Shown here: positions 3,138 through 59,848 of the stretch, piece by piece
Numbering within the stretch: position 1 is the stretch's first letter
Layout of the letters: each line of letters begins with the position of its first letter
Source of the DNA: Octopus sinensis
Taxonomy: Eukaryota
Assembly: GCF_006345805.1 (NCBI RefSeq)
Contig: NC_043000.1
Coordinates: 75,640,001-75,704,000 of the forward strand
Direction of reading: 5' to 3'
Length of the DNA: 64,000 nt
Translations under genes and position numbers: made by a program
Notes under the pieces: generated by a model
The model's input: the letters and a program-made list of their open reading frames with translations, nothing else
The model's database searches: none
Told to the model about the DNA's origin: nothing

Positions 3138-3290
3138 GAAAAGTAGTCCAAACGAATCAACACTTAGAAAATACTATGTAGACAAATATTACGCAGAAAC
3201 TATGAACAAAATCAGGGAAGCTGTCAGAGATAAGCAAATTTGGAACTCGATTGATGAAACCGCTGATTTGTTAACATCAGAATTTCTTAC
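3138..3290 (+). pseudogene. hAT-like transposase fragment (CGGBP1-like/hAT type)
   Basis: PNESTLRKYYVDKYYAETMNKIREAVRDKQIWNSIDETAD resembles the ...IWVSIDETTD catalytic region of such transposases. Confidence 0.6.
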
Positions 3291-8524: not shown

Positions 8525-9790
8525 ACCATCATCATCATCATCATTGTTCGACCGTGGTCGAGACAATGGAATTTACTATGCTACGTCAGACTTCACGGTC
8601 CATCATGGCATTACGGAGGTCCTGTTGCTGGATGCCTGTATCCCTGGAGATTACATCAGGGTAGGAGAGTGTGCATCCTCTGATATCGCGAGTAGATGGC
8701 TTCCAGAGGAGAAGAGTAGATATTGCCTTGTTTTCAGCTCTACAACAATGTCCAGAAAACTGGACTCTCCTATCTTTCACAAGAGATGATACAGGTGGTA
8801 GTTTCCCATATATTTGTACTTTGGTTGGATGATGCTTCCACAAGAGATTTTGAGCTTGCATACGGAGGCAAGTGTAAGTTCCATCCAACCACCTCTCAAG
8901 CTTCTTTGATAATGTCCAGGTTTCCGAGCCATATAGTAGAATTGGTTCAACTGTGGCTTTGAAGATTTTGAGTTTGAAATCTCTACTTAGATTTGATGAC
9001 CAGATCTTATGCATATCATTACTGGCTGACCAGGCCATACCCTTTCTAGTTAGAAAATCTTTTCCAAATGATGATATGTATGACCCAAGATATTTGTAAT
9101 CAGAAACCATATTTAAGGGCGTATTGTTGAGAGTATGGATGATGAAATCACTGTTGGACAGGCACTTGTTTACATATTCAGTCTTGGCCTCATTGAGGTA
9201 AAGACCTACACAATTTGAGGCTTGTTCAAGAGATTGTAAAAGAGACTGGGCATTGGAGAGAAAATCACTGATAAGAGCGATGTCGTCAGCAAAGTCAGTG
9301 TCTGTCAAATATTCAGCTGGGTGTCTGGAACTTCTTCTAGGTTTTATTTCAAAGCCCTTGCCAGAAATGGTATCAACTGACATACGTAGCACATAGTCAA
9401 CGACAATGATGAAGAGAAATGGGGCGAGTGTGTCTCCCTGCAGTATTCCGACTTTGATTGAGAAAGATGATGTTTCTCCATCAGGGGTTAAGATGGTTGA
9501 AGTCATATCTGTGTAAAGGACCTTGATGGCAGAAATGATTTTGTCTGGAATCCCATAGAGCTTAAGGATTTCAAACATCTTGTACCTTTCTACAGAGTCA
9601 AACGCTTTAGAAAAGTCTACAAATACCATTGCAAGATCGCGATTAAATGCTTTTGATTCTTCAATAAGTCTGCGTAGGCATAGTATCTAGCTCAATGTTG
9701 AGCGCCCATGTCTGAATCCATTTTGGTTCTTTCAGGGCAAAGGTTCAACAAAAAGGATGAGATGGTTTAGAATCAGTTTGTTGTACAAAT
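8525..9790 (-). mobile_element. 5'-truncated RTE-group LINE
   Basis: 347-aa RT ORF at 8586-9629 (DFSKAFDSV, QGDTLAPFLF, FADD, YLGS). (GAT)n tail, seen as (cat)n at ~8527-8545. Confidence 0.88.
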
Positions 9791-20549: not shown

Positions 20550-20704
20550 CTCTCTTACCTGTCTGTGTCTTGGCTACACGCGGGTGGGAAGGGGCTGGTG
20601 ACACAAACTTTCATTCACACTTTGAATTTGGTACTGATACTGAGTTGAGATGATGCCTTCTAGTATCTCGAAATTTAATATACAATTATTCATAATTGTA
20701 ATGT

Positions 20705-20795
20705 CCTACGCTGATGAGAAAAGAAGTTGGGTAAGATATAATTATCTAATTCTTATGCTTTCCTAAAACTTAATTTCGAAACGTACGTCCGTAGG
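20705..20795 (+). ncRNA. Type-I hammerhead ribozyme, family 3
   Basis: Stem I cctacg/cgtagg, core CUGAUGA (20711-20717), stem II GAAA/UUUC, GAAAC-GUAC-GUC. Predicted cleavage after C20789. Confidence 0.9.
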
Positions 20796-21287
20796 TGACT
20801 TAAAATTGTATGATAGATTGCCGTCATTTCATTCTCTCTTACCTGTCTGTGTTTGCCTTTCAAGTGCTGTGTTTTTACTGAGATCTCCCTTTTAGTATAA
20901 AGAATAGCTATAACTCTTTGACTGCTATTTCTAAATTCGGTGTGTGGTGTGGCAATTCGTTGCTAAACCCTTAATTGCTTAGTATTACTTAAATTTTCCT
21001 CGAATGAGGCTTTTACATGCCGAAATCTACTTGGTGTAATTAATAATTATTCCAAATTAATTAATTTCACCCTATATTGTTACTGATAACCATATTTCAT
21101 CCCAGTAAATGACCACAGCATCTTGTCTTGGCTACACGCGGGTGGGAAGGGGCTGGTGACACAAACTTTCATTCACACTTTGAATTTGGTGGTACTGGTA
21201 ACGGCTTTAGCTTGCTCTGATACTGAGTTGAGATGATGCCTTCTAGTATCTCGAAATTTAATATACAATTATTCATAATTGTAGTGT

Positions 21288-21378
21288 CCTACGCTGATGA
21301 GAAAAGAAGTTGGGTAAGATATAATTATCTAATTCTTATGCTTTCCTAAAACTTAATTTCGAAACGTACGTCCGTAGG
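21288..21378 (+). ncRNA. Type-I hammerhead ribozyme, family 3 (second copy)
   Basis: Same core and stems as 20705-20795. Confidence 0.9.
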
Positions 21379-21714
21379 TGACTTAAAATTGTATGATAGA
21401 TTGCCATCATTTCATTCTCTCTTACCTGTCTGTGTTTGCCTTTCAAGTGCTGTATTTTTACTGAGATCTCCCTTTTAGTATAAAGAATAGCTATAACTTT
21501 TTGACTGCTATTTCTAAATTCGGTGTGTGGTGTGGCAATTCGTTGCTAAACCCTTAATTGCTTAGTATTACTTAAATTTTCCTCGAATGAGGCTTTTACA
21601 TGCCGAAATCTATTTGGTGTAATTAATAATTATTCCAAATTAATTAATTTCACCCTATATTGTTACTTATATATATATATATATTTTACTACTAATATTT
21701 ACTACTAATATAAG

Positions 21715-24613
21715 TGTAACGGTTTTAATTGATTGGTAAACTATATTATGATGAAATATTGATACTCAGCAGGGTGTGGAACGTTGTCTCACAGTTACTG
21801 GTAGTAAACTTCATTTCTCCCTCTGACCAATGTTCTAGCTGGTCAGCAAGACTTCGTTCTCATTGAGTTGTCACCGCAGTGACTAACTGATTTTTACTTG
21901 TGGTATGCTTGCTTATATAAAGATCCAGAAGGATAGATATATCATTGAGAACAATAGATTTAGTTGGTGGTCTTGTTATCTATTCTAGCTTTTGGTGAAG
22001 TAGTAGAGGTTAGAAAGGGTCAAGTGAGGAAGACATTATTTTGGCCTAGCTAAAGGCATCTGGAAACTGTAAAACTGCTGTCAGAGAAAAACCATTGTTC
22101 CTTCGTGGGAAAAGCTCTGTTGCAGTGTTAATTTAAATTTGGATATGGTGGATTGAATCCACTTCATGCATGCAAGATTCACTACATACACTCCCCCTGC
22201 CAGTGAGCTTCCTGGTAAGGAAACGAATGATCGAAGGAAATGAAGAAATGCATGGTAAAGGTAAAATTTGCATATCAGGAGAGAGGATCGTTGAAGTGTA
22301 TACGGAACAGTTTTCTGTTTGGATTAGTTTGAATAGTGGTGTCGCTTTGCGTGCCAAAATGTGTGCAGTCAGTGACTGGGCAGTACAGCAAATGAGCGCA
22401 TGTGTGCGCGTGAGGGCATATACAGGAATGCAGGTGCACGTTTCGAAATTGACTGTAAAATAAGCTGAGATGAGCGAGTGAGTGCATTCTCAATCCGTGA
22501 TATGAAAGATTTTCCTGCCGGGTTGCAGTGTTTGAAATACCTTGAAGGTGAAAGCCCGAAGTGAAATGTGTCTGGTGCTGTTGTCGTGGTTAATTGCTGA
22601 GTTAGCAAGGACGACAGTGTAAGCATGCTTGAGTGATGCGCGAGACAGATAATTTGCTCTGTTAATTATTGACCAAACAGGGGTCTAACAGGGGGAAATT
22701 ATGTCTAAACATGAGCGCAGAGCATGTGATCATCCGACGTGCTTTGAGTCGGGAGAAGAATTGGGCTGACGCAGACATATTGCAAAATAAGGCAGTAGAT
22801 GTGCATGTGCATGAGTGCAATAGAGCTTGCAAGGCTGAGGCTAATGCTAGTGCATTGATTACAAAAATAGTGTACAGTATTGAATATGCCAGTGATTAAT
22901 GCAGTAAGGCTGAGGCTGCCAGCCAGTGCATGAGGTATTATATGCCTCGATCATGCAGGAACAAAAGTGTGGCATGCTGGTGCATTGTAGGGGACAAACA
23001 ACTTCATGTATGCGTGACTGACCTAGGGTCTTACAGAGATGAGTTGTCTACAAGGGCGCATTGAGTATGGAAAACAAGCGAGAAAGGCATGTGTGGTGTA
23101 TGAATGTAACAGAGTCAACATGTATGTGTGTATGAGCAAAGTGTGCAGATGCATGTGCAAGGCCAGGCTATGAGGAAAGGTGCATGCATGTGTATATGCA
23201 ACAATATAAACATTTGCAAAGTGAACGTTAAAAAGTACATGCAAAATATGAATAATAAAAAAGCGGAAATAATAAACTTAACTGAAAATAGTGTCCTTTG
23301 TTAAAAGTCTACAGCTGAAAGTGAAAAGATGTGCATGCAAAGGAAAAGATTTGTTGAATGTCTATGTGAGAGTCTTATGTACATGCAAAAGTTCACAGAC
23401 AATGCAGGGTTTATACGTCGGGACTAGACGAAAAGTGCGTGTGTGCCAAAAAGGTTGCATGTGCAGGCTTTTGTATTTTCTTCCAGTTAGTTTCTGTTCA
23501 TGTAGGCAAATACCTTGGGCGTCGGCTGTGTTGTATTGTTGTGAAGTGCATCGTAGATTGCATCGAGGTATAGTGCTTTCTGTAGCAGGTCAATGGAGGA
23601 TGCATCTTGGTGGTGATTCTTTTTCTTTGATTTGGTGACTGTTGATATTCTAGTTCTTTAGTTCGAATCAGTAAAAATGCAGCGGCATGCAGCATCGGAA
23701 GGTATCAATTCTCTTTACACAGGTCACCAAGTTGTTGCAATTGAAGTTTTGTTTAATAGCGATGTCTGTTATGGTACAATGTTGGGGTCGCTAGTTTGTA
23801 ATGGTTGGTTCTTAGGAAGGCTGCAATGCTCTTGTTTGAGGGTCACCAGTTGCAACGGCAATTGGTTGTAACGATATTGTTTTTAGTTGAAGTCGTGGGT
23901 CACCAATTGTAACGGCAGAAATTGGTTTGGTAAATATTATTATTATGAGTTGGAGTCAGCAGATGCAATGATAAAAAGTTGTTGTTGCTGTCTATTGTAA
24001 AATGTGAATGATAGACAAGGCATGAAGTTTTAAGAAAATATTTATTTACTGTTACATTACAAATACCTTGCCTCGACGAGCAGGTTAATGATAAATCCAA
24101 AGGCATGCGAAGTAAAGTTTGTATTAGGGTTCGCTTCATTGTTTAGTAGTAATTGCGGAGACATAGAATGATGTTGTAAGAGAACAGAATTAGAGCTAGA
24201 GAGAATTGTAGGGTGGGAAACGTTGTCTCACAGTTACTGGTAGTAAACTTCATTTCTCCCTCTGACCAATGTTCTAGCTGGTCAGCCAGACTTTGTTCTC
24301 ATTGAGTTGTCACCACAGTGACTAACGATTTTTGCTTGCTTATATAAAGATTCAGAAGGATAGATATATCATTGAGAACAATAGATTTAGTTGGTGGTCT
24401 TGTTATCTATTCTAGCTTTTGGTGAAGTAGAAGAGGTTAGAAAGGGTCAAGTAGTGAAGACATTATTTCAGCCTAGCTAAAGGCATCTGGAAACTGTAAA
24501 ACTGCTGTCAGAGAAAAACCATTGTTCCTTCGTGGGAAAAGTTCTGTTGCAGTGTTAATTTAAATTTGGATATGGTGGATTGAATCCACTTCATGCATGC
24601 AAAATTTGCTACA
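21715..24613 (-). mobile_element. Non-autonomous LTR retroelement (element B), tRNA-Trp-like PBS, non-coding interior
   Basis: 5' LTR 24613-23908, PBS tggtgacccacgac (23905-23892), PPT ggcagggggag next to the 3' LTR 22186-21715. LTRs end GTTACA. No TSD found. Confidence 0.82.
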
Positions 24614-24753
24614 CACATATAATTATTCAATTATTTGCATATTTGTATGTATTGTAGGGAATTAGTAATAATAGTACACCTCTCCCACATAACAAATGGA
24701 ATAACCTAGTCACTATAAGTAAAGAGAAGTACATGAAGTACCAGAGTACATAG

Positions 24754-25151
24754 CAGGCAGTTTAAAATATTTGTATCGGAGTTAATTTTGTCTTGTTATT
24801 TGTTAGACGTAAGTCACTTTATTGAATATTCGTTGAAGGTTTTCCCCTTGTGGGTCTACCCAAGATTATTGATTGTTACTGTTGAAATTGCTGATTATTG
24901 TTGTTTTTTTCCTATTGTGGAAAAATGGAGAAGGTGCCAGTGGGAGACCACAGTTATGTGGCTGCAACTGATAATAGAGTGATGGTTGAAGTCGAACCAA
25001 AGAAAATGAAAGAATGTAAGAAATTGATGGAAAAGGAAGGAAATACACTGAGACTAACGCTGCCTGCAGAACTCACAAGTAATGTAACAAAAAGGACAGT
25101 AATTTATAAAACACTGAAGGTAGCAAGCAGAAGGATCGAAATAGCAACAAT
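24754..25151 (+). pseudogene. Deleted copy of the same ORF1-only cassette in the 5' LTR of element D
   Basis: VEPKKMKECKKLMEKEGNTLRLTLPAELTSNVTKRTVIYKTLKVASR is near-identical to the 26440-26600 region. Sequence resumes at LTR sequence corresponding to ~27990. Confidence 0.85.
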
Positions 25152-25439
25152 ACTGGTTTTACTGTATACTGTATACTGAAGTGGGCATTATGTAAATCCA
25201 ACATTTTAAGGATTATAACAGTGGTGATGAGGATTTAAACAACTCGCGAGGAATTCATAAACTTGACAAGGATTTAAACAACTCACAAGGAATTCATAAA
25301 CTCAACGAGGATTTGAACAACCCATGAGGAATTAATAAACTCGATGAGGATAAACCAATTTATGTGCAGTTAACAGAAACTTAAAGAGGAGTTAATAAAC
25401 TCACAAAGTTGGTGTATGAATTTTACGAAAAATCATAAA

Positions 25440-25880
25440 AGTATGGAATATTTGTTAGCAGGTTTGCTCAAGTTGCAAAAACAGTCACAACAACAGCTGA
25501 AAGAACAACAGCAGCAGATACAACTGCAAGAGCAACAACAGAAGCAACAACAACAATTAATATTATAGCAACAAATGCTGCAATTACTGAAGTTGTCAGG
25601 AAAGTCAGAAAAATTGTTCTTGACAAACTATGTTGCACACTCCATAACAGAGTTCAAATATGAACCTGATGAAGGAGTTACCTTTGAAGCATACTACAGA
25701 AGATATGAGCAAATCTTTGATAAAGACTGTAAAGACTGGGATGACAAGATGAAAAAGCACTTAATCAAGAGAAAACTGGCAGTGACAGAACATGAGCAAT
25801 ACAGTAATTATGTACTCCCAAGAAAATCTTTGGACATAGATTTTAATGACACAATAGATATATTGTGTAAAATTTTCAGT
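25440..25880 (+). pseudogene. Gypsy gag N-terminal remnant
   Basis: Gln-rich N-terminus, then ITEFKYEPDEGVTFEAYYRRYEQIF...EHEQYSNYVLP...DILCKIF, joined directly to the pre-PPT region. Confidence 0.75.
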
Positions 25881-26188
25881 ACGATACATTCCAAGTACCA
25901 ACACCACTGCAGATGCCCAGGCATACAAGTAAGAGGAAAAGAAAATGTACAGAATTCTTGAAAATAGATGCCAATCGAAAAAAAAAATTAAATTGTATGA
26001 AAAAATATCAAAAAAGGGAGGTGAGGGGAATAAAATTGTTGCTAAATAAAATGACACTTCATAAGAAAAACTTAAAAGGGGAGATGTTTTAGGAAATTAG
26101 TGATAATAGTACACCCCTTCCACATGACAAATGGAATAACATAGTCACTATAAGTAAAGAGAATTATGTGAAGTACCAGAGTATATAG

Positions 26189-27951
26189 CATGCGGTTTGA
26201 GATATTCGTATCGGAGTTAATTTTGTCGTGTTAGACATGAGTCACTTTGTTGAATATTTGTTAAATGTCTCCCCTCGTAGGTGTAACCAACATTATTATT
26301 GTTGCTGTTGAAATTGCTGATTATTGTTATTTTTTAATTGTTTTTTTTTCCTATTGTGGGATAAATGGAGAAGGTGCTAGCTATGCAGCTGCAACTGGTA
26401 GAGGAACAGAAGTTGAAGTGCTGGAGGTGCATGAAGTAAAAGTCGAACCAAAGAAAATGAAAGAATGTAACAAATTGTTGGAAAAGGAAGGAAACACACT
26501 GAGACTAATGCTGCCTGCAGAACTCACAAGTAATGTAACAAAAAGGACAGTAATTTATAAAACACTGAAGGTAGCAAGCAGAAAGGTTGAAATAGCAACA
26601 ATCGTGGCTATTGAGGAATGTTTGAAGGAAATAAAGAGGTTGACTACGTTCATTACCAGAGAAAGAAAGTATGGTACTGTGGAGGTGCATTTAGCGATAG
26701 AGGATAAAGCAATTAAGCACTCCACGGAAGCCATAAGAACAGAGGAATGGGTGCTTTTGCCGACCGACTGTGGCAAACGTGTTGCCAGGGTGGGAGTTGG
26801 CAAAGTGCCACCAGAGATAAAAGAAACATGGCCGATGGCAGCCATTATGTTCAATATGGAGGAGGAGGCCAAGATTCTCAAGGCCACAAGAACCAAAAGT
26901 ATGAACTATTGGGGGTATGGCATAGAAATGGCCATTCAAGCGAGTATAGAAGACCTCAAAAGAATCGCAGAAGAGATAGTTCTGCCTGAAGACATAAGGC
27001 TGCGAGTGGTGGTGGAGGGTAGGCCGCCCATATGCTATGAATAAGAGAAAAAGACCACATGAAGGCGAGGTGCCCCCCAGAGAGAACAATAGATAGAACA
27101 GACTGAGAAGCAAGAGAGTGCAGACCAAGTGGTACAAGAAAGAGAAGTGATAGAGTAAGCCCTCCAACCAGAGAGGCAGAAAAAGAAAGAAATGGTAGAG
27201 AAAGAGGTTGTGAAGGAAGTCAGAAGGAAAATAAAATGGTGGTTGACAAGAAGATCGAAAGGGAACTTGAAAAGGAGCTCGAGGAGGAGACAGCAGCAAA
27301 GACATTGATTGTACCAGTAGAGGAGGAGGATTCAGGAGAACAATTATATGAGGGTGAAATGGAGAGATTATTCAGAGTGGAGGAGGGAAGAGAAAAGGTA
27401 CCAGCAGTGGAGCAGGAAAAGGGAAAGCAAGTAAGAAATCCCCCAAAATATCGATGGAATTTTGTGACATATGCGTAAAACAAGGAAACAGAACGGAAGA
27501 TAATGAAATTTAAGTCTATCATCATAAGGGTGAAGTTGCCCATAGAAGTGTATTCAGAGAATGTGAAGGCCATTGTGGTTGATAGGCTGAGAGATATGTG
27601 TGGAGGGGGAATTGATCCACCAAGAGTAGCGGTGGAATTTGATAAATTGCCACCAGTAGTGGAATTGAAATATCTCAAACCTTTTATGAAATACTAAGAA
27701 AAAGGAAAAAGTAAGTTAAATTGTTTTATTGGAAAAAAAGGAAAAAAAGAGAAAAAACGATAAAGAAAAAAAAACAAAGGAGAATGAATAATTGTAAACA
27801 GTGTATTAAATGTTCAAATGGTACTGTATGGGGGTGGGACCCATGCAGTCATTTCATTTTCATTTGTTTTATGTTTTTTGTCCCCACTGTGATGTTCTGT
27901 CATCCTTGTAGTGTCCCCTCTGTGTTATGGCTGTAGTGCCAAATAAAGAAA
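26189..27951 (+). mobile_element. ORF1-only (HAL1-like) Tx1-related element inserted in the 3' LTR of element D
   Basis: 11-bp TSD agagta(t/c)atag at 26178-26188 and 27952-27962. ORF1 remnant ~26365-27697 with a degenerate CCHC (RPPICYE) and acidic tract. Ends ...gtgccaaataaagaaa. Confidence 0.78.
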
Positions 27952-28110
27952 AGAGTACATAGTAAGTGGTCAGAGATAGTCGTGTATTTACTGGTTTTAT
28001 TAAATATACTGTATACTGAAGTGGACATTATAACAATCCAACATTTTAAGGATTAAAACAGTATGTATTTATGCCTTGCTTTGGGCACTGCCATGATATA
28101 TTGATATATA

Positions 28111-29440: not shown

Positions 29441-30015
29441 ACATGGTGACTCTAATCTCTCTTCAGGTTTGACTTTAGTGTTTTTTGAACTTAGAGCACA
29501 AGTGACTGAATGAATACTGCAAATGCAAAGCAATCTATCTTATGCTCGAATGACTTTACTAATTCACCTGGTCAGTTCATATTGTGGCTATAATTCCAAA
29601 TAAGAACTGACCAGTCCATATCTGCATGGAAAATGGATGTACAACAAAAATAATAATTAAGTTATATATGTATATGGTTAATATCTGTCTAAAAGAAGAA
29701 AAGAAAATGGAGATTTTAGTCAGCTAAAATGAATTGATAAGTCCATATATAACATCCAAAGGTACATCTTTCTCCTTTGATGAAATCATACTCATGTCAC
29801 ATAAATGTAAATCTAATGTACAAATTTGTAATTAAATTACTGAGTATTAACTGAAAGGCTGTAAGAAGCAAAAATGACCAATTTGTTGTTAATCATAAGC
29901 AATTGTTAACTTCCTAATCTCCATTTTCTTTTCCTCTTTTGAATGGATATAAGCTATATGCTTTATATATACCTATTATTTTAAGGAAATTCATTTCCCC
30001 TCTAATTATATATTT

Positions 30016-30765
30016 CCCATCTTTCCGCCATTGGCGGTCTTTTTTTCCTCCTCTTCTTGCTAAAACTTGAAAATCGCCATTACCATTACGATTCTGCAAT
30101 TTAAATTCCCAATTCAACTTACTTTCTTCTTCAATTTCAACTCCCGGTCGATGCCCGCAGCAAGTTCTTAAAAATTTATCTTACTATTTTATTCGTTGTT
30201 ACTACGTTTATTCATACATTGATAACTTGATTCGTCTTACCCATCTCACTCACTACGAAAATTTAACCTTTTAGGCTACTTTCAAGCCTTCGCCATAACT
30301 TGATTTATCTTTCCTATCTCTCTCTCTACAAAATTTAACCTTAGGCTACCTCAAGCCGTAATCCCATCTTTTCCCATCTTTCCGCCATTGGCGGTCTTTT
30401 TTTCCTCCTCTTCTTCTTCTTATGCTAAAACTTGAAAATCGCCATTACCATTACGATTCTGCAATTTAAATTCCCAATTCAACTTACTTTCTTCTTCAAT
30501 TTCAACTCCCGGTCGATGCCCGCAGCAAGTTCTTAAAAATTTATCTTACTATTTTATTCGTTGTTACTACGTTTATTCATACATTGATAACTTGATTCGT
30601 CTTACCCATCTCACTCACTACGAAAATTTAACCTTTTAGGCTACTTTCAAGCCTTCGCCATAACTTGATTTATCTTTCCTATCTCTCTCTCTACGAAATT
30701 TAACCTTAGGCTACCTCAAGCCGTAATCCTATCTTTACCCATCTTTCCGCCATTGGCGGTGCGCC
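30016..30765 (+). repeat. ~360-bp tandem repeat (two units plus start of a third) directly upstream of the RTE LINE
   Basis: Units start cccatctttccgccattggcgg at 30016, 30373 and 30738. Confidence 0.9.
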
Positions 30766-33700
30766 CGCCCCCACCCCCACCACCAATACCGATGAACACT
30801 GTTCTCACCCCCACCACCAATACCGGTGAACACTGTTCTCACCCCCACCACCAATACCGGTGAACACTGTTCTCACCCCCACCACCAATACCAGTATACC
30901 CTGTTCTCACCATCTACACCGGATACGCCCTACTCCCTCCTCCTCCCCCCACTACCCCTTCTCCTCATATGCTTTCACTGTGAAAAGACAAGCTGCTAGC
31001 GCCATAGCTCATCAACTGCCCACCGATCTTACGCTTCCTCCTGACACTGCCTCAATCCGACCATCCCCTTTTAGTACCCTCCCGCCTCGTAATATCCTAC
31101 GTTTTTATTTCTTACGAACCTATACCAATCCTTCCTGCCATCGTTCCTCCTTACCCCAACTTTCCCCACTGGTTGCTCCCCTATACTACCCGCCTCAACT
31201 GGACCCCCCCTCCCCGACTCAACTCTAGAATATCTGTATTTCTTTCCTCTACCTAATTACGTTACTCAGTGACGATAACGAATGTCCACTGCTAACACCA
31301 GCTCCTGCCCACGGCGTGGTCAGGTTGGAAGAGAGATCAAAAGAAAAATACCACGAAAACTATCACCACCACAACAACCCTCCTCTTCTCAGGCGCCGAA
31401 TCCCCCCCGTCCCCCCACATCTCCTTCCCAGTTTTCAGAGTTGGCACTATCAATGTTGGTACATTGACAGGCAAGTCTAGTGAGATTGTAGAGATGCTAG
31501 AGAGAAGACAGGTTGATGTATGCTGCATACAAGAGGTAAGATGGAGAGATGCTTCGGCTAGGGTCCTCACGGGCAAGGCACTTAGGTACAAACTCTACTG
31601 GCAAGGTAACGCGGAAGGTGTAGGGGGTGTAGGCATTCTCCTTGCGGAGGAATGGGTGGATAAGGTCATAGAGGTTGTCAGGGTTTGTGATAGAGTGCTT
31701 AAGCTCAGGTTGGTCCTACAGAGTGGCACAGCTATGATTATCTCAGCCTATGCCCCACAAGCGGGACTACCAAATGATCAGAAGGACAACTTTTATGATA
31801 CCCTTCTGCAGGCTACTTCAAAGACTAGTAACAAGGACCTCATCTTTGTAGGTGGAGATTTTAATGGGCATGTTGGGCGGGAATCGGGTATCTTCACTGG
31901 GGTACATGGTGGCTATGGTATTGGCACCAGAAATGATGAGGGAACTAGACTGCTGGAATTCTGTGATGCATGTAACCTTCAATCTGCAACACTAACTTCA
32001 AGAAGCCAGTCTGCCACCTTATAACTTATCAGTCAGGAGACTCCGCTAGCCAAATAGACTTCATCCTCACCAGACAACGGGATGCAGGGTTGCTCTTGAA
32101 TACAAAGACCCTCCCGGGTGAAGAATGTATCCCTCAGCATAGACTAATCATCAGTGACTTTAAGCTTGAGGCCAGAAGGACTCCAAGAAACAAACCAATC
32201 CAGAAAAGAAGGATTTGGAGGCTAAAGAACCCTTCGCATGGTCAGAAATTTAGGGACATACTCATCAAGAAATTTGATGAGAGGGAGGAGGAGCTTCAGA
32301 CGTCAGACATAGAAGGTAGCTGGGAATTCCTACGGGACAGCTTGTTGAGTGCCACAGACCAAGTCTGTGGATGGTGCAAAGTCCCTTCCAGACCTAGAAT
32401 TACGTGGTGGTGGAATAGTGCAGTAGATAAAGCCATCTGTGAAAAGAGACGGGCCTGGAAAGCCTGGAAGGATGGGGGCAGCAGGGAACTGTACCAGATA
32501 GCCAAAAGGGAGGCTGGGCGGCAGGTATACATTGCCAAGATGTAGCAGAAAAGAAGAAGTTTGCCAATGTCCAGCGTCGCGAGGATCAAAGAGCTGAAGT
32601 ATTTCGGATTGCCAGACAGTGTGTCAGAGAAAATAGCGATGTTATAGGAGAGAAATGTGTCCGCATGGATGATGGGGCACTTGCTTTTACTACTAGTGAA
32701 AAGAAAGAGGCTTGGAGAAGCCATTATGAAAGACTGCTGAATGAGGAGAATGAATGGGAGGAGGAGAGCCTGCCAAATGTTGACCCAGTAGAGGGACCAG
32801 CTACCCGAATAGACAGCTCCCTTGTAGATAAGGCAATTAAGGATATGAAACCAGGCAAAGCCCCTGGCCTATCAGGAATCACTGCTGAGATGCTTAAAAC
32901 AGCTGGCTATGTGGGCTATGCCATAGTCACCCGCATTGTAAACCAGGTAGTTCACAATGGAGTCATACCCAATGACTGGTGCAGCAGCACCATAGTCAAC
33001 TGCTACAAGGGTAAGGGTGATGCTCTAGATAGAAATAACTACAGAGGTATCAAACTGTTGGACCAGGTGATGAAGGTCTCAGAGAAGGTCATAACCAATC
33101 TCATTAGGGAGAGAATTTGTTTAGATGAAATGCAGTTCGGTTTTGTACCAGGTAGAAGCACCACTGATGCTATATTCCTGGTCCGACAACTGCAGGAGAA
33201 GTACCTAGCTAAAGATAAACCCCTCTACATAGCTTTTGTAGACTTGGAGAAAGCCTTTGACAGGGTTCCCCGTTCCCTTATCTGGTGGTCGATGCGGAAA
33301 CTGGAGATTGAAGAATGGCTAATAAGGGCTGTACAGGCTCTATACAGAGAGGCTGTCAGCAAGGTTAGGATTGGCAACGAATATAGTGAAGAATTCCGGG
33401 TAGAAGTAGGTGTGCACCAGGGCTCAGCCCTCAGTCCCCTTTTATTCATCATAGTCCTTCAGGCAATAACAGAGGAATTCAAAACGGGATGCCCCTGGGA
33501 GCTCCTCTATGCCGATGACCTAGCTCTCATAGCAGAATCACTACCGGAACTAGAAGAGAAATTTCGGGTGTGGAAGCAAGGGTTGGAATCAAAGGGCCTT
33601 AGAATAAATGTAGCAAAGACCAAAGTATTAGTAAGCAGCAAGAGGTACTCAGCACACATCCCCTCGGGTAGGTGGCCCTGCTCAACCTGTAGGAAAGGTA

Positions 33701-34830
33701 CAGGTAGAAACTCCATAAGATGCACCCAATGTAAGTTATGGACACATAAGAGGTGCAGCAACATTAAAGGGAAATTAACAGATAAGATAGCTTTCATGTG
33801 CGGCAGATGCACAGGGACAATAGACACAACAGACACTCAGAAAACAGATTCCATCACACTCCAGGGAGAGAAACTAGAAGTAGTTGATAGTTTCCGCTAC
33901 CTGGGTGACCAAGTTAGTAGCGGAGGTGGATGCACAGAGAGTATCACCACTAGAATACGAATAGCCTGGGCAAAGTTCAGAAAGCTCCTACCCCTACTGG
34001 CAACAAAAGGTCTCTCCCTCAGAGCAAAAGGTAGATTGTATGATGCATGTGTGCGAACTGCCATGCTTCACGGTAATGAAACATGGGCTGTGACTGCAGA
34101 AGACATGCGTAGACTTGAAAGAAATGAAGCTAGCATGATCCGCTGGATGTGTAGTGTCAGTGTGCACGCAAAACAGTGTAAGTATCCTGAGAGAAATGCT
34201 GGATATAAGAAGCATCAGATGTGGTGTGCAAGAGCGACGCTTGCGATGGTATGGTCATGTGCTGCGGATGGATGAAGAGAGATGTGTGAAGAAGTGCCAC
34301 TCCCAAACAGTTGAAGGTATCAGGGGGAGAGGTAGACCCAGGAAGACATGGGATGAGGTGGTCAAGCATGACCTCAGAGCATTGGGCCTCACTGAGGCAA
34401 TGGCGAAGGACCGAGATCTCTGGAGATATGCTGTGACTACAAAGACCCGGGCTGCTTTCTGCAGCAATTCCACATACCCCCTACCCATTCAAAGTACCCC
34501 GGATCCCCAAAGTACCCTGGATCCCCAAAGTACCCCGATCCCCAAAGTACCCCGGACCTCGTTGCCCCCGTGCCGCTGACACGTTAAAATGCTCGAACCG
34601 ATCGTGACGATGCCGGACCCTCCGGCCCCTGTGCAGGTGGCACGTAAAAAGCACCCAATCCACTCACGGAGTGGTTGGCGTTAGGAAGGGCATCCAGCCG
34701 TAGAAACTCTGCCAGATTCAGACTGGAGCCTGGAGCGGCCCCTGGCTTCCCAGACCCGGTCGAACCGTCCAACCCGTGCTAGCGCGGAAAGCGGACGTTA
34801 AACGATGATGATGATGATGATGATGATGAT
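30766..34830 (+). mobile_element. Near full-length RTE LINE (APE endonuclease, RT with PHD-like finger), frameshifted
   Basis: GTINVGTLTGK...CCIQEVRW and GDFNGHVG (endonuclease); 536-aa ORF 32665-34275 with DLEKAFDRV, HQGSALSP, YADD. 33-bp tandem repeat at ~30782-30895, 18-bp repeat at ~34490-34555, (GAT)n tail. Confidence 0.95.
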
Positions 34831-34844
34831 ATATATATATATAT

Positions 34845-37598
34845 GGCATAGAAGACAACTGGAGGTTCCTACAGGACAACCTGCTAAGGGCCACTGACCA
34901 GCTCTGTGGATGGTGCAAAGCCCCCTCTCAACCCAAAATAACGTGGTGGTGGAACAATGTTGTTGACAAGGCTATTAGACAAAAGAAACAGGCTTGGAAG
35001 GACTGGAAGAACAGTGATAGCAGGGAAGTGTATCAGACTGCCAGAAGGGAAGCTAGGAGGCAGGTTTATTTAGCCAGAGGGGAAGCAGATAAGAAAAAAT
35101 TTGCCAATGTTCTGCACCGTGAGGACCAAAGACTTGAGGTATTTTGTCTTGCAAGGCAGTGTGTGAGAGAGAATTGTGATGTGGTAGGAGAGAAATTTGT
35201 TCGCATGGATGATGATTCACTTGCGCTAAATGAGGATGCAAAGAGAGAGGTTTGGAGACGCCACTATGAAAGGTTGCTGAATAAAGAAAATGAATGGGAT
35301 AAAGAAAGACTGCCGAATGTCGACCCAACAGAGAGACCTGCTATCCGAGTTGACAGTTCCTTGGTAGTTAAGGCAATTAGAAGCATGAAGACAGGGAAAG
35401 CCCCAGGCCCATCAAGAATTACTGCAGAAATGCTCAAAATATCTGGTAGTGTCAGCTATAGCCTAGTCACCCGTATAGTTAACCAGGTGATACACGAAAG
35501 AGTCATACCCAATGACTGGTGTACCAGCATAATAATCAACTGCTACAAAGGTAAAGGTGACGCCCTAGATACAAATAATTACAGAGGTATGAAGCTGTTG
35601 GATCAGGTAATGAAGTTTAGGGAGAGAGTAAGTTTGGATGAGATGCAGTTTGGTTTCGTGCCAGGGAAAAGCACCACTGATGCCATATTTCTGGCAGCTG
35701 CAGGAGAAATACCTAGCCAAAGATAAGCCCCTGTACATGGCTTTCGTTGACATGGAGAAAGCCTTTGACAGGGTCCCCCGATCCCTTATCTGGTGGTCAA
35801 TGAGGAAACTAGGGATAGATGAATGGTTAGTGAGAGCTGTGCAAGCCATGTACAGGGAGGCTGTAAGTAAGGTAAGGGTTGGCAACGAGTACACTGAAGA
35901 ATTCAAGGTAGAGGTTGGGGTACACCAGGGTTCAGTCCTCAGCCTCCTCCTATTTATCATAGTCCTCCAGGCAATAACGGAGGAATTCAAGATAGGATGC
36001 CCCTGGGAGCTCCTCTATGCTGACGACCTTGCTCTAATTGCTGAGTCACTATCAGAACTAGAGGAGAAGTATCAAGTGTGGAAACAAGGATTACAATCGA
36101 AGGGCCTTAAAAATCAACCTAGCTAAAACCAAAGTCCAAATAAGTAGGAAGGCAGGCAGACCACAAATCCCTTCAGGTAGATGGCCCTGCTTGATCTGTA
36201 GTAGAGGCGTAGGTAGAAATTCTATAAGATGTACCCAGTGTAAGCTATGGACACATAAGAGGTGCAGTAATATTAAAGGAAGGCTAACTGGAAAGATAGT
36301 TTTTGTATGTGGCAGATGCTCGGGAGCAATAAACACTGAAAATGAGCAGAGACCAGCTTCCGCCACATTCCAGGGAGAAAAACTAGAAGTAGTTGATAGC
36401 TTCCGTTATCTAAGTGACCAAGTCAGTAGCGAAGGAGGGTGCACTGAAAGTGTAGCTGCTAGAATAAGAATAGCTTGGGCAAAGTTCAGAGAGCTCTTAC
36501 CTCTGCTGGTGACAAAGGGCCTCTCGCTCAGAGTAAAAGGTAGACTGTATGACGCATGTGTACGAACAGCCATGCTACACGGCAGTGAAACATGGGCTGT
36601 GACTGCTGAGGACATGCGTAAGCTTGCAAGGAATGAAGCCAGTTTGATCCGATGGATGTGTAATGTCAGTGTGCATACTCGACAGAGTGTAAGTACCTTG
36701 AGAGAAAAGTTGGACCTAAGAAGCATTAGATGTGGTGTGCATGAGAGACGTTCGCGCTGGTGTGGTCATGTAGCGAGAATGGATGAAGATAGTTGTGTGA
36801 AAAAGTGCCACACCCTAGCGGTTGAGGGAACCTGTGGAAGAGGTAGACCCAGGAAAACCTGGGATGAGGTGGTGAAGCACGACCTTCGTACTTTAGGTAT
36901 CATCGAGAAAATGACCAGAGACCGAGACCTTTGGAAGTATGCTGTGCGTGGGAAGACCCGGCAGGACAAATGAGACCATAACCCGTGGCCTCTACCTGGG
37001 ACGTAGCCAGCCCACTTATGCATACCTTTCCTTCTTGTGACACAAACCCTACTTGTGAAGACCTGTTGAGGCAAGTGAGATCCAAATCCAAATCAAAATC
37101 AATTCGATTACTGGCATTCGTGCTAGCAGGATGCAAAGAGCACCATACGAGTGTGATCGTTGACAGAGCGGCTATTCGAGTATGATCGTTACCAGCATTG
37201 CCTTACTGGCACTTATGCCTGTGCTAGCAGGGTGCCAAGAGCACCATCCGAGCGTGATCGTTGCCAGAGCAGCCAACTGGCTTCCATACTCGTGGCATGT
37301 AAAAGGGCACCATTCGAGCGTGATCGTTACGAACGATTCCTCACTGACACCTGCGCCGGTGGCACGTGTAAAAAGATTCGAGTGAGGTCGTTGCCAGTGC
37401 CGCCTGACTGGCCCCCGTGCCGGTGGCACGTAAAAAGCACCCACTACACTCTCGGAGTGGTTGACGTTAGGAAGGGCATCCAGCTGTAGAAACTCTGCCA
37501 GATCAAGATTGGAGCCTGGTGCAGCCATCTGGCTCGCCATCCCTCAGTCCAACCCATGCTAGCATGGAAAGCGGACGTTAAACGATGATGATGATGAT
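34845..37598 (+). mobile_element. 5'-truncated RTE LINE of a related subfamily, head-to-tail with the previous copy
   Basis: RT fragments 35028-36973 homologous to 32665-34275. Ends gcggacgttaaacgatgatgatgat. Confidence 0.93.
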
Positions 37599-39975: not shown

Positions 39976-41231
39976 CTTTTTTTCTTCTTTCAAATTTGCT
40001 TCCATTTCTTGCCGAGTGTCTTCCCGACTCCTAGGGCAAAGAAACTCATAGTGTATATTGGTAGGCCATTAAACCAAACTCAGTAGTTCGTTCATTTTTT
40101 TTTTTTTTTTTTTGTAAAGTTAAATTAAAATACATGAGCAGCAACAGTTCTCACATCGACAATGCTCTTCTCAATACGTGTGATGTACCAGTTAAGACAA
40201 TCTTTTGCACTTCTTGCAGGGATGGTAAGCCAGGGATCATTCTCATATAATTTTCGGTTCCCTTCTTGATCATTCCTAGTGCTCCTACGATCACTGGTAT
40301 TGTAACCGCCTTGAGATGCCACATTTTCTCAATTTCAATGAGTAGGTCTTTATATTTTCTGAGCTTGTCAAACTCTTTCGCTGAGATATTATGATCACAG
40401 GGGATGCTCATGTCGATCAATAAGCAAACTTTATTGTTTTGGTCTTTCACAACAATATCTGGTTTATTGGCCTTGATGGTTCGGTCTGTATGTACTGGAA
40501 AGTCCCACAGAATGGTTACATTTTCTCCTTCAGTTACAGCCTCAGGGTGGTGATTATACCACTTGTCGGCAGTTTTGATATTGTAATGCCGACTTATTAG
40601 CCAGTGGAGATATTGGCCAACTCTGTCATGTCTTAATTTATACTCCACTGGTGCTAAGACTTTACATCCAGAGATTAGGTGGTCCACTGTTTCAATCATG
40701 TCGTTGCAGAATCGGCATTTTGGGTCTGCTCCACTTTTCATCACATTGGCCTGGTAGTTCCGGGTTAATAGGCTTTGGTCTTGAGCAGCCAGGATGAAAC
40801 CTTTGCTCTCTGCTTTTAGCCGTGAGCTCCGTAGCCACTGATGGGTTTGCTTCTGGTCAACATCAGCTTGTTTGCTGCGGGTCACATATTTGCCGTGCAG
40901 AGGTTTCTCCTCCCACCTATCAGCCAATTGCTCGTGCGCTTTTTTCATTGCCATCATTTTCACCTTCTTTGCAACAATAGTTGCCTTACTTCCCTCGGGT
41001 TGTTCAGTTTGGGTATCCTGCACGAGACCAATAGCAAATTTTTTGCTTTCCTTGATGATAGAATGAAGCTTCTTTCGTCTCTCGTGATTTTCCACGAGCT
41101 TTAGCATCCAGTCATTCGATATTTCGAGATATTTGGCCAGTCCAATTGTGGTTGTTTTGTAAGCTAGTTCAAATTGGATCAGGCCTCGACCTCCTTGGGC
41201 TCTGGGAAGGTAAAGGCGATCTACGTCTGCC
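39976..41231 (-). mobile_element. 5'-truncated R4/Dong-clade non-LTR element (restriction-like endonuclease)
   Basis: KADVDRLYLP...GGRGL; 318-aa ORF 40151-41107 with CRFC...HLISGC, RHD, KPDIVV, IDMSIP, KYKDL, VIVGALG. Flanked on both sides by (TAA)n. Confidence 0.9.
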
Positions 41232-43975
<2,744 letters not shown>

Positions 43976-45345: not shown

Positions 45346-48300
45346 TAAATCCTTAAATCCTTAAAAATGTTTTAGCCCGAAGGCCGCGGCCATGCTGGGG
45401 CACCACCGCTGAATGAGCTACACTAATTTGTGAATCCACCTCTGATACGTGGCACTTGATCAACAAGGGAGTTCGATGCTGCTGCCCGCATCCGCGTCTC
45501 CTGTCGTGAGGTAGGCTCATCTGGGACTCCCAACAAGAAGAGATCCAGTTTAGTTTTAAAGAAACCCACATCCACACCATGTAAGTCTCTCAGGCATTTA
45601 GGGAGGATGTTAAAGAGCTGTGGTCCTCTGAAACCCAAGCTGTTGCAGTATCTGGACCTGTATTTTGATGGTGATGTTGGAATCCTTGGCACCATGCAGT
45701 GGCGCCCCGTTCTGCGGTTGGAGTAACTTTGAATGCCAAAGTTTGTGACAAGACCTTCCAGGATTTTCCAGATGTATATCACCGCATATCTCTCCCGCCT
45801 CCGCTCTAGGGAGAAGAGGTTTAATACCTTCAGTCTTTCCCAGTAGCTGATATTTTGCATTGAGACGATTTTCTTTGTGTAGCTTCTCTGAATTGCTTCG
45901 AGTTTTGCTGTTAGTTTTATATTGTGTGGTGACCAAAGTTGGGAGCAGTAGTCCAAGCGGCTGAGGACGAATGTTTTCCATAGGACCATCAGTGTCTCCT
46001 TCTCTCTTGTTCTGAAAGTTCGGAGAATCCATCCAGCTAGCCGTCTGCATTTTATCACCAGATTAGCAATATGCATTTGGAAAGATGCATCATTGCTCAT
46101 GTCAATGCCCAGGTCACGCACTGATCTTGACTCAGGGATTGCAATTCTTCCTGGGCCAGTGTATCCAGTCTTCACGTCATTTACCTTTGTGTGCCAGTAG
46201 CGCAGGGCCTGGAACTTACCTGCATTAAACTGCATGTTGTTGTCCTCAGCCCACCTGTATATTGTGTCCAGCTCATGTTGCAGATGCACAATATTTTCAG
46301 GGTTTTGTATTGCGTGGGAGACTTTTGTGTCATCTGCATAGCTAGCAAGGGTGGTCATCGTAGCAACTGAAGGCATGTCTGAAAGGGCTACTATGAACAT
46401 CAGTGGCCCCAAGACAGTGCCCTGTGGGACACCGCTTGTTATTTGCGTTTCCTTGGAGGTGGCTCCATTGCTCACAACTGCCTGTTTTCTGTCTTTGGAA
46501 GTTGTGCAGCCACTCTCCAAGTTTCCCGCCTATGCCGAGACCACGCAGTTTGTGACAGATCATACCATGGTCGACTTTATCAAAGGCTTTTGCAAAGTCG
46601 AGATATATTACATCCACATTTGAGCCATTTAGTAGCTGTTTCAACACCCAGTCATAGTGTTGCAGGAGCTGTGTTAGGCAGCCTCTACCTGGTCGAAATC
46701 CATGCTGGGTGTCAGACAGCAAGTCATTTTCTTCAAGGAACATGATTAGTTTCTTACGGACTATTCGTTCCATGACTTTGCTGATGTGTGAGGTCAGAGA
46801 GATAGGCCTATAATTTTTAGCATCTGCTCTGCTACCTCCCTTATGGATAGGGCATATTACCCCCTCTTTCAATTTGACTGGGAGCTTACCACTTGCAAGA
46901 AAGCTCTGAAAAAGAAGCTGTAGCGGTTTTGCAAGGGCTCGTTTGCACGATTTGAGAAGGATCGCTGGGAATCCATCAGGTCCAGCAGCTGAGTTTGTGT
47001 CAATCTCATCAATGGCTAGTGTGATATCATCATCTTCGATGTTGATGTACTCAATTTTTGTCTCTTTGGCCGAGGTAAAGTGGCAAAGAATTCTTCTGGG
47101 TTGTTTACTTGCCTGTGTCCTAGAGGTGTAGTGAACACACTTTGGAACTGTTCGTTCAGTATTTCACTTATCCTCGTGGGATTTCCTGTGAGAGAGCCAT
47201 CTTTTTGGAAGAGAGGTCCTATTCTCTGGTGCACTGTGGCTGTCTCTTTGGCAAACTTAAAGAAAGCTTTAGGGTTTGATTTTATATTTTCTATTACCCA
47301 AGCTTCTTTATCTGCTCTCTCCTTTTCATGGGACTGATGTAGACTTTTCTCAGTTTCCATTAGCATTCTTTCGAGCCGAGACTTCTCACCACTTTTGGTG
47401 TGCTTGCTCAGGCGGTTTGCAATCCTTGTCCGTCGTCTCATAAGAATCCTCCTTTCTCTAGGGATCCTGTTTTTGTTCTTGTGTGTGCTGGCCCTGCACA
47501 CTGGGACATATTTGTCATATATGGCTTGTATTATGGACATGAAGTGTTTGTGTTTCATGTTTATGTTCGGTGTGGAGAGACATTCAGGCCAATCCTGTTT
47601 GAGGATCTCTTTCTCAATCAACTTCCAGTTGGCTTTATGAAAGTTTAAGTTGGAGAGATGGTGGGTGCTTCGTATAGGCTGTGTGTCTACGGGGGCTTTT
47701 GTTCCATACCTAGACAGCTCTATTATGTTGTGATCCGAGATCATTGTCGGCATCACATTAACATTATGGATAATATCCATATTGTTTGTGAAGCAGAGAT
47801 CCAGTATATTATCTGCCCTTGTTGGTTGCAGAACTATTTGCTCCATGAAAGAGGCATTTGTGAGATGGAGCAGGGACTCCACCTGTGCCTGCTGATGGTG
47901 TGTCATCCCTGGGAGCATCTGCCCCCCAGGCCATTCCACATTGGGGAGGTTAAAGTCACCCATGAAGAATACACTGTTGTGCTGTTCAAGGTTGGTGAGG
48001 ACTTCTCCTATTTTTGTTAGGCAGTCTTCAAACATACCTGAGTGATTTGGGGCATCTGGTGGGCGATATGTAGTGCATATGACGATATTCAGTTGTCTTA
48101 TGTGTACAATTTGAGTTTCACATACTGAGTTTGAATATGACAGCAGGACCTGGGGCGTGAGGTCATCTCGGATGTACATTGCAACTCCACCATAGCTCCT
48201 CCCTTTTCTATCTGTGCGTATGACTGCATATTGCGGCATGTGTATCTCTGCATCACCTATATCGGGTTCAAGATGCGTTTCTGTGAGTGCCATGCATATA

Positions 48301-49300
48301 GCTTGATTGCATGTCACAAGGTCTCTCAGGAATGAAATTTTCTTTTTACAGTTTCCGCGCAGCAGCCCTCCTACATTCAGTAGAAATATTTTTGTGGTGT
48401 GTGTGTTGGTGTTGGTGTCTGTGGTGGCCATCCTGCATCTGTTGGAGGTGGCCTTATGTGGTGGTAGTTCCAGCTTTGTGCTTGTAGCCAGGTCAGCTGC
48501 TGAACAATTTTTTTGTGCCATGCACAAAAACGATTGCTGTTCAGCTGCCGCCCTTCTCACATCTGGGTGAAGCTGGCCACCTGTTGGGTTTCCGCGCACC
48601 ACATCTGCATACTGTCTTTCAGTAGTGGTCAGTGCGCTTTTTTCCCTTCTTTTAACTTTTTCTTTTTGTTCTCCCTGAGGGAGGGACCTCTGTCTCGCGT
48701 CCGTGCGGTTTTGGTAGGGCCTCCGATGTGCAAAGCGACAGTTTGCACCTTCGACGCCGTACCAGCAGTCCCCCCTCAGGTAGAATTTGCAGATGTTTCC
48801 TTCTTTGCCCTTATAGTTCTTGCTGGGGTCCTTTTGTTTTCTCTGGACAGGGTTTCTTTTAGCTTTGATTTTGTCGCCTTTTACCTCCTGTTTCCCATCA
48901 ATTTTAGGGTGCTTTTCTTTTCTTGCGGCCATCGCACCTCTTTGGTCTTCAGTTGTGGTGTTGGGAGCTGGACATGTGTCATTGTTTCCCTGTGTTCTAG
49001 GTTTCTCCGTTTGGTTCTGGATGTTTTCTTCATCCTTTTGGCCTTCCCTGGTGCCGTCACCTCCTAGGATGATCTCCAGGGTGTCTACATGTTGCCTGAT
49101 TAGAGCGTACGAACGGATAAATTCTCGCTTCTTTCGCTCTATCTGGGCGGTGGTTCTCGAAAAATTGTTGCTTTTCAGCGCCGCTGCAATAATATTGTTC
49201 GGCGAGTCGTACTCAGCAATCTTCCAAGCGCGGACGAACAATTGCACCTCTCTCGCAGACCAGTTTCTTGCCATTTTCGTCTAGTGAAATATAGGAACAG
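45346..49300 (-). mobile_element. CR1-group LINE, near full length
   Basis: 752-aa ORF 47016-49274 (N-terminal domains plus APE endonuclease: LNVGGL, GDFNLP, SDHN). RT in 46342-46872 and 45423-46520 (DFAKAFDKV, PQGTVLGP, YADD). Tail of (aaggattt) repeats on the minus strand. Confidence 0.92.
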
Positions 49301-50165: not shown

Positions 50166-50417
50166 ATACGGAGGACAAATTATAAAGATAGAATAGCGCG
50201 TATTTTTATATCTTTTTTAATTATTATCTTCTGGTTGAAAGAACACTAATGATAACAAATAATAAAAATGTATGAGAGAGATAGAAATAGAAATGTAAGA
50301 AAGAGAAGGAGAGAGTGTGTGGCAAAAACGGAGGACAAAATATAAAGATAGAATAGCGCGTATTTTTATATCTTTTTTAATTATTATCTTCTGGTTGAAA
50401 GAACACTAATGATAATA
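50111..50417. repeat. ~160-bp tandem duplication
   Basis: 50111-50270 is repeated at 50271-50417. Confidence 0.9.
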
Positions 50418-59833: not shown

Positions 59834-59848
59834 CACAACCGCTTCTAC

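Follow-up and report, generated by a model that had tools for sequence, protein, structure and literature searches.

Cassandra, Helenus and Ajax (TRIMp3) are propagating long terminal repeat (LTR) elements that carry SINE-like sequence of non-LTR origin in both of their LTRs (5S in Cassandra; tRNA and 5S in Helenus and Ajax), and their origin has been proposed to lie in the insertion of a short interspersed nuclear element (SINE) into the LTR of an ancestral terminal-repeat retrotransposon in miniature (TRIM), followed by propagation (PMC10886601). HAL1 (half-L1) is presented in PMC5753468, which cites Bao & Jurka 2010, as a derivative of the mammalian long interspersed nuclear element (LINE) L1 that consists of open reading frame 1 (ORF1) only. 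Here we describe a locus in which both themes meet: a 3.4-kb LTR element at positions 24645–28065 of a 64-kb stretch of Octopus sinensis chromosome CM016862.1, at ~75.66 Mb (hereafter the window, to which all coordinates refer unless another locus is named), with an ORF1-only derivative of an L1/Tx1-like LINE in both of its LTRs. An earlier note on this DNA had called it a Gypsy element bearing a non-LTR ORF1 cassette that transposed after the cassette was captured; both identities were corroborated by our analysis, and we argue that the chimera was probably copied as a unit.

Anatomy of the chimeric element and its empty relatives

Sequence inspection and self-comparison delineated a pol-less LTR element comprising a target-site duplication (TSD), a primer-binding site (PBS), a gag fragment, a polypurine tract (PPT) and two LTRs. 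The protein of the gag fragment is a database record at this very place and is 62–63% identical to P0007 (O. sinensis, locus L005) and P0008 (O. bimaculoides, locus L004), which identify two relatives of the host element. The features are as follows.

24645–24649 (no strand): left copy of the 5-bp TSD GTATG, letter for letter the same as 28061–28065
24650–25220 (+): 5' LTR, 571 bp, aligning with 26085–26602 and then with 27990–28060
24743–24753 (+): target repeat AGAGTACATAG before the insert in the 5' LTR, same junction as at 26178–26188
24754–25151 (+): truncated copy of the insert in the 5' LTR (5' untranslated region and the first ~75 codons, ATG at 24925)
25222–25232 (+): PBS-like sequence TGGTGATGAGG, beginning 1 nt past the 5' LTR and conserved in L004 and L005
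25225–25341 (+): leader tandem repeats, 3 x 39 bp, found by repeat search, each with the PBS-like motif GA(T/C)GAGGATTTAAAC
25575–25961 (+): gag N-terminal fragment, 128-aa ORF (Pfam DUF7083, PF23309, E 3e-19)
26074–26084 (+): PPT AAAAGGGGAGA, abutting the 3' LTR and likewise conserved in L004 and L005; L004 has AAAAGGAAAGA in the same place
26085–28060 (+): 3' LTR, 1976 bp, termini TGTTTTA...TAAAACA
26178–26210 (+): left copy of the target duplication in the 3' LTR, 11-nt core AGAGTATATAG, imperfect extension possible over ~32 nt
26189–27951 (+, sense): ORF1-only (HAL1-like) derivative of an L1/Tx1-like LINE, delimited by same-ended homologous units elsewhere and ending in ...GTGCCAAATAAAGAAA
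26365–27697 (+): decayed ORF1, originally ~444 codons, from alignment to P0002, P0003, P0005 and P0015
27952–27984 (+): right copy of the target duplication in the 3' LTR, 11-nt core AGAGTACATAG at 27952–27962, possible extension
28061–28065 (no strand): right copy of the TSD, same letters as 24645–24649

The TSD is indeed perfect, as had been claimed, and the base LTR, previously put at ~225 bp, measures ~201 bp. In the 3' LTR the 1763-bp insert separates base-LTR segments of 104 and 109 bp; in the 5' LTR, base LTR leads into the first 398 bp of the insert, after which the final ~70 bp of base LTR follow. The ~1.4-kb deletion attributed to the 5' LTR cassette amounts to 1387 bp (the equivalent of 26603–27989; deletion junction 25151|25152) and took with it the 3' junction of the insert and 27 bp of base LTR. 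The 3' LTR shows the TGT...ACA form of the TG...CA termini, and the start of the 5' LTR has mutated to TAT. The leader tandem repeats sit directly after the 5' LTR; the PBS-like sequence has counterparts in L004 (TGGTGACGAGG) and L005 (TGGCAACGAGG) and presumably matches the 3' end of tRNA-Ser(GCT), and no tRNA genes were found in the window or in the fetched loci.

The internal region (25221–26084) is 864 bp long and retains the gag N-terminal fragment as its sole LTR-element coding sequence. The absence of pol noted earlier is confirmed, with every pol domain missing from the window copy: where a complete member would have gag and then pol in the order protease, reverse transcriptase (RT), RNase H, integrase, only the gag fragment is present, and all reading frames of element and insert are now broken. 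The window copy is thus a non-autonomous or deleted member of the Ty3/Gypsy type. The Gypsy label is supported by L004, an internal RT fragment of which has Ty3 RT as its best match among solved structures (4OL8, E 4.6e-11; also Ty3 Gag-Pol, 7Q5B). A tandem duplication at the DNA level, considered in place of an LTR element, was ruled out by the PBS, the PPT, the TG..CA termini, the 5-bp TSD and the homologous loci L004 and L005.

These two loci provide the empty site. In both, gag is preceded by a ~180–207-bp LTR homologous to the left and right base segments of the window element and free of the cassette; L004 additionally keeps the 3' LTR, the pre-PPT segment and the PPT. The stretch AGAGTAT..AGATAGT.GT occurs once in the LTRs of L004 and L005 and is duplicated around the cassette in the window, and the L005 LTR, the empty-site homolog, reads ...GGGAGAGTATGCAGTTGAGGGTTTAGATAGTTGTGG... 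with the whole ~32-nt stretch present once. The 11-mer AGAGTA[C/T]ATAG precedes the insert in both LTRs (24743–24753 and 26178–26188) and follows it in the 3' LTR (27952–27962). Its left and right copies agree at 10 of 11 positions, and the next 21 nt agree in register at 15, a level reached by 0.025% of the local 21-mers.

Identity and mobility of the insert

The cassette in the 3' LTR, described earlier as complete, is structurally of full length, and its ORF is broken, having lost 13 bp behind the ATG and running into a stop at 27042 and into frameshifts further on; the ORF of the 5' LTR copy can be read from MEKV without interruption as far as the deletion. Comparison with P0002 indicates that the ancestral gene was a single ORF of ~445 codons, running from MEK... 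to ...KPFM[KR]Y*, with two RRM-like domains, a CCHC knuckle, an E/K-rich linker and a conserved C-terminal domain ending in KPFMKY*. The knuckle of the window copy was destroyed by the stop at 27042 and a frameshift, and zf-CCHC is found in the homologs; a Pfam scan of the window ORFs gave no match for the cassette ORF. Protein searches with the latter found octopod relatives only, and a HMMER scan with the family profile returned 272 matches, the named ones among them from O. bimaculoides, O. sinensis, O. vulgaris and Argonauta hians.

The origin of the family is revealed by its neighbours. P0085 from Argonauta (profile E 5e-10) is separated by 39 bp from a downstream 812-codon ORF, which has Exo_endo_phos and RVT_1 domains, is followed by a zf-RVT ORF and is closest to human L1 ORF2p (E 4e-42). 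The same ORF1–ORF2 arrangement is found downstream of the units in O. bimaculoides locus L002 and in O. sinensis locus L008; the latter (P0026) was considered as a second chimera and rejected, being a distant autonomous LINE. A further example lies in the window itself:

54820–59850 (+), from ~54600: decayed full-length L1/Tx1-like LINE with ORF1 at 54820–56054 and, by tblastn, an ORF2 with apurinic endonuclease-like (APE) and RT domains at 56388–59580

Its ORF1 belongs to the protein family of the cassette, its ORF2 is 46–66% identical to the ORF2 of the A. hians LINE, and its 3' end reads ...CCCTTGTGGGTAATAAAAAA. L1-Tx1 families have been reported for O. vulgaris (PMC13282606).

Structure prediction agrees with this assignment. 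An alignment of 10 sequences gave an AlphaFold2 model with a predicted local distance difference test score (pLDDT) of 35; in its place an alignment of 37 sequences was used, with which the first 214 residues were modelled at pLDDT 90. The best matches of this model in the PDB according to Foldseek are all tandem-RRM structures (raver1, IMP3 RRM12, hnRNP A1/A2B1 and NONO/SFPQ; probability ~1), and a sequence-profile search of the PDB identified the CCHC knuckle only. The N-terminal 214 residues of the cassette protein are therefore predicted to fold as tandem RRMs followed by a CCHC knuckle. Because its relatives stand upstream of APE/RT ORF2s, and because of the tandem-RRM fold and the knuckle, we classify the protein as a LINE ORF1p of the RRM+CCHC kind, in line with the non-LTR origin claimed earlier for the ORF1-only cassette. 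A retrocopied host gene was also considered and ruled out, since the same protein is the ORF1 of ORF2-bearing LINEs and the unit carries a LINE 3' terminus.

The ORF1-only units share their boundaries. A unit terminates ~255 nt past the ORF1 stop in ...GTGTCCCCTCTGTG..GGC.GTAGTGCCAAATAAAGAAA. ORF1-only copies from three Octopus species conserve this terminus (3' end ...GCC.T.GTGCC.AATAAAGAAA), and a terminal motif of ~25–40 nt is recognisably common to these units and the ORF2-bearing LINEs, in which it reads ...CCCTTGTGGC[CG]AATAAA[AG]AA. Similarity between the units and the sampled LINEs is not detectable in the remainder of the 3' untranslated region, and no ORF2 similarity was found inside any ORF1-only unit. 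Given the shared LINE 3' end and the homology of the ORF to ORF1 of APE/RT LINEs, the insert can be described as a HAL1-like, ORF1-only LINE derivative.

Such units also occur outside any LTR, as in a second, independent copy in the window, ~60–67% identical to the LTR-borne one:

62–1752 (-): ORF1-only copy, 5'-truncated by ~50 nt, with a perfect 15-nt TSD GACAAAGAAATTTCT (47–61 and 1753–1767)

A copy at L010 (O. vulgaris) has an 11-nt TSD, and the unit at L007 (O. sinensis) is 5'-truncated and begins at unit position 583. With TSDs of 11 (or ~32), 15 and 11 nt, 5' ends at ~1, ~50 and 583, an A-rich 3' end and no terminal repeats, the independent copies bear the marks of target-primed retroposition. 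The TSDs of the other copies (GACAAAGAAATTTCT, TGCTGGGTTCG) are unrelated and the L007 flank is different as well; the retroposon therefore has no site specificity, its other copies having entered unrelated targets.

In O. bimaculoides the units are arranged head-to-tail (L002, 9329–13831; L003, 8472–10388; junction ...AATAAAGAAAA|CGTTGAGCAGCAG...). The L002 array adjoins a more distant unit and then ORF2 fragments, and L003 resembles a permuted pair (unit positions 651–1892, then 1–653); end-to-end template jumping or unequal crossing-over could be the source of such arrays. Base-LTR sequence was looked for around the O. bimaculoides arrays and none was found, a 10-nt resemblance upstream of the L002 array being probably due to chance.

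In three independent insertions the next 9–21 nt of the flanks, past the perfect TSD core, are still similar, with mismatches (26189–26210 versus 27963–27984; 1743–1752 versus 37–46; L010, 7916–7927 versus 9663–9674). Transitions account for 5 of the 6 mismatches in the second window copy and for about half of those in the LTR-borne copy. These extensions may reflect either long TSDs (20–32 nt), error-prone beside the 5' end of the element, or a mode of 5' joining that favours partial homology.

Some observations on the same LINE lineage deserve mention in their own right. At 40150–43750 (-) the window contains an ORF2 of this lineage (RVT_1, zf-RVT; 42–56% identical to the Argonauta ORF2), and a long (AAT)n microsatellite lies at ~41230–41500. 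The octopus gene sets list many LINE ORF1 copies as ordinary genes (P0001–P0005, P0015, P0023, P0026, P0031 and P0045), under labels such as 'CCHC-type domain-containing protein' and 'uncharacterized protein LOC...' and, in one case, 'EPM2A-interacting 1-like'; in the gene model of P0028 an RGS domain is fused to the knuckle region of ORF1.

Transposition of the chimera and the alternatives

The two LTRs differ to the same extent inside and outside the insert, with 12 differences in 104 positions of the left base segment (p 0.115), 42 in 374 positions of the insert (0.112; 332 bases identical) and 7 in 69 positions of the right base segment (0.101), i.e. a uniform divergence of ~11%. In this comparison, which the earlier note had suggested, the cassette is not more similar than its flanks. 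The 5' junction is identical in both LTRs (24753|24754 and 26188|26189), with the insert beginning at the same nucleotide of the element. Near the ORF start, the 3' LTR copy alone has lost 13 bp, and the 5' LTR copy alone 24 bp in frame; since these lesions are private to each LTR, the ORF start was intact when the LTRs were duplicated. The intact 5-bp TSD, in turn, shows that both LTRs stem from one integration event.

Together with the lack of site specificity of the retroposon and the unoccupied LTRs of the related elements, these data make retrotransposition of the chimera with its insert the best explanation, to which we assign a probability of roughly 70%.

Several points weigh against this explanation. 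One chimeric locus has been seen, in an analysis to which the octopus assemblies were not open for searches by DNA; protein look-ups yielded no second chimera and no annotated proteins closer than 74% (cassette ORF) and 63% (gag) identity. The 5' LTR lacks the 3' junction of the insert, which is visible solely in the 3' LTR, and because the deletion removed it, the shared site is documented by the 5' junction alone; the earlier statement that both LTRs are interrupted at the same site holds to that extent, i.e. for the junction at the agagtacatag-type 11-mer. With no more than 104 and 69 aligned bp of base LTR, an early gene conversion would go undetected by divergence. Finally, a 1.76-kb sense insert with an AATAAA in the LTR should hamper the production of full-length genomic RNA, and hence would be expected to entail poor fitness and a low copy number of the chimera. 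A scan for the junction in metagenome contigs gave 0 matches, in a collection that is no source of octopus DNA.

The main rival holds that the retroposon entered one LTR after the integration of the Gypsy element and was then transferred to the other LTR by intra-element gene conversion, so that the chimera never transposed. Gene conversion between LTRs is documented for endogenous retroviruses, only a single chimeric locus is known, and the short base segments leave little power to detect a slightly younger converted tract. The insert, however, is not less divergent (0.112) than the flanking base LTR (0.115 and 0.101), and conversion would have had to copy a heterology of 1.76 kb very soon after integration. 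We regard this scenario as improbable, albeit not negligibly so, and it is the reason why the earlier claim of transposition after capture, favoured by the common 5' junction and the uniform divergence, is not considered proven.

Could the composite have been a working family? A TATA-like sequence, CTATAAGT, lies at 24713–24720 in the 5' LTR and at 26148–26155 in the 3' LTR, ~30–40 nt upstream of the insertion point. If this motif is the LTR promoter, the insert would sit right where R begins, with ORF1 transcribed in sense from the LTR. The AATAAA of the insert itself, ~55 nt upstream of an ATTAAA in the base LTR, would be in competition with transcription reading through into the element, which should leave the chimera a poor replicator. 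One could also imagine a non-autonomous Gypsy derivative that had lost most of gag and whose LTR promoter drove the LINE ORF1, the protein with its two RRMs and CCHC knuckle acting as a surrogate nucleic-acid chaperone or packaging protein in a functional cross-class chimera. With 6–7 substitutions separating the halves of the possible 32-nt target duplication, the insert may already have been old when this copy integrated, which would fit repeated propagation. We find this reading very doubtful; there is no sign that the LTR element made use of the ORF1 gene.

Two independent insertions of a site-specific retroposon at the same nucleotide of both LTRs are highly improbable. Sequence-specific families do exist within the L1/Tx1 group, the first ~21 nt of the insert resemble the LTR sequence downstream of the site, and the head-to-tail stacking of units in O. 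bimaculoides could be read in the same sense. Against this, the other copies, with their unrelated TSDs (GACAAAGAAATTTCT, TGCTGGGTTCG) and the L007 flank, occupy unrelated targets, both LTRs of L004 and the LTR of L005 are unoccupied, and the copies in the two LTRs share their exact start nucleotide, whereas other copies vary in 5' truncation. That the ORF segment was an original part of the LTR (an accessory gene in U3 or R, as some retroelements carry ORFs in their LTRs) and was lost from L004 and L005 is scarcely credible, being already contradicted by the empty sites and by free copies with their own TSDs and LTR-less arrays, as well as by the duplicated LTR sequence (single-copy in L004 and L005) that bounds the segment and by the LINE family's own 3' terminus at its end.

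If, as we favour, the chimera was copied with its insert, the order of events may be pictured as follows. One LTR of an octopod progenitor of the Ty3/Gypsy family, with LTRs of ~200 bp, would have been hit by an ORF1-only derivative of an L1/Tx1-like LINE, inserted in sense orientation by target-primed reverse transcription ~30–40 nt downstream of the TATA-like motif, with duplication of 11 (possibly ~32) nt of the LTR. The progenitor would then have been transcribed and reverse-transcribed in one or more rounds; as a single RNA supplies the U3, R and U5 for the two LTRs of each new copy, the insert would have come to stand at one and the same position in both. Integration of the new copy at GTATG would have generated the 5-bp TSD. 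Subsequent decay would account for the ~11% divergence between the LTRs, the loss of 1387 bp from the 5' LTR, the stops and shifted frames of ORF1 and the reduction of the internal region to the gag fragment and the pre-PPT segment; the loss of pol may have taken place before or after integration.

Neighbouring features and comparison with known systems

The region is rich in retroelements. Upstream of the chimeric element there are direct duplications of 93–94% identity (21771–22190 versus 24210–24617; 20566–21088 versus 21124–21671); kin of the duplicated repeat are found at 2467–3138 and ~38–39.5 kb, and the chimeric Gypsy remnant itself lies 28 bp downstream of one copy. At 30013–30941 a 365-bp unit is repeated twice (97–100% identity), and a 34-bp tandem array (CACCCCCACCACCAATACCGGTGAACACTGTTCT) comes after it. 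An unrelated LINE with Exo_endo_phos_2 and RVT_1 domains occupies 45420–50180 (-), and the 240-aa ORF upstream of it shows no similarity to the cassette protein. More reverse-transcriptase ORFs lie at 32665–36970 (+) and 8589–9629 (-), two of them with PHD-finger matches beside RVT_1. Positions 62297–62396 are an assembly gap of 100 N.

The locus illustrates cleanly how, in nature, an insertion nested in an LTR comes to be inherited by both LTRs. It suggests a way for an LTR element to take a protein-coding part of a LINE to a new genomic position; the origin put forward for Cassandra, Helenus and Ajax, a SINE in an LTR, would thereby extend to a coding insert. To say, as was done earlier, that it links the two retrotransposon classes is an overstatement; a nested insertion was carried along. 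The process is already known from SINE-bearing LTR elements, the octopus specimen is a single decayed copy diverged by ~11%, and its direct biological importance is small because it is old and non-functional. A by-product of more practical use is the octopod-wide family of ORF1-only (HAL1-like) L1/Tx1-like derivatives, whose ORF1 combines two RRMs with a CCHC knuckle and whose 3' terminus is conserved; this family should help the annotation of octopus repeats, as many copies are now annotated as 'CCHC-type domain-containing' genes.

Several known elements resemble parts of this arrangement. HeT-A of Drosophila is a non-LTR element whose sole product is a CCHC protein of the Gag/ORF1 type; it borrows the RT of another element and forms head-to-tail arrays specific to telomeres. 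The octopus units share with it the restriction to an ORF1-like CCHC protein, the reliance on an RT encoded elsewhere and the head-to-tail arrays; unlike those of HeT-A, the arrays of O. bimaculoides (L002 and L003) lie inside the chromosome and give no hint of a telomeric role. SVA of hominids is a composite of LTR-class and non-LTR-class sequence which moves as one unit, as the octopus chimera probably did, but in the reverse direction, with an LTR-derived piece riding in a LINE-mobilised element.

For the insert itself, the closest known kind is HAL1. In the account given in PMC5753468, HAL1 is likewise a LINE derivative without ORF2 that kept ORF1 and the parental 3' end and multiplied as such. 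The octopus insert differs in its host and LINE lineage, in the head-to-tail arrays in O. bimaculoides and in the type of ORF1, which is RRM+CCHC in place of the coiled coil, RRM and C-terminal domain of mammalian L1. For the chimera, the nearest parallels are Cassandra, Helenus and Ajax, which are, like the octopus locus, non-autonomous LTR elements with sequence of non-LTR origin at the same place in both LTRs. Their inserts are short and of the pol III type and the chimeras are proven families of many copies, whereas the octopus LTRs accommodate a protein-coding LINE derivative of 1.76 kb with a pol II-type AATAAA end, known from one decayed copy.

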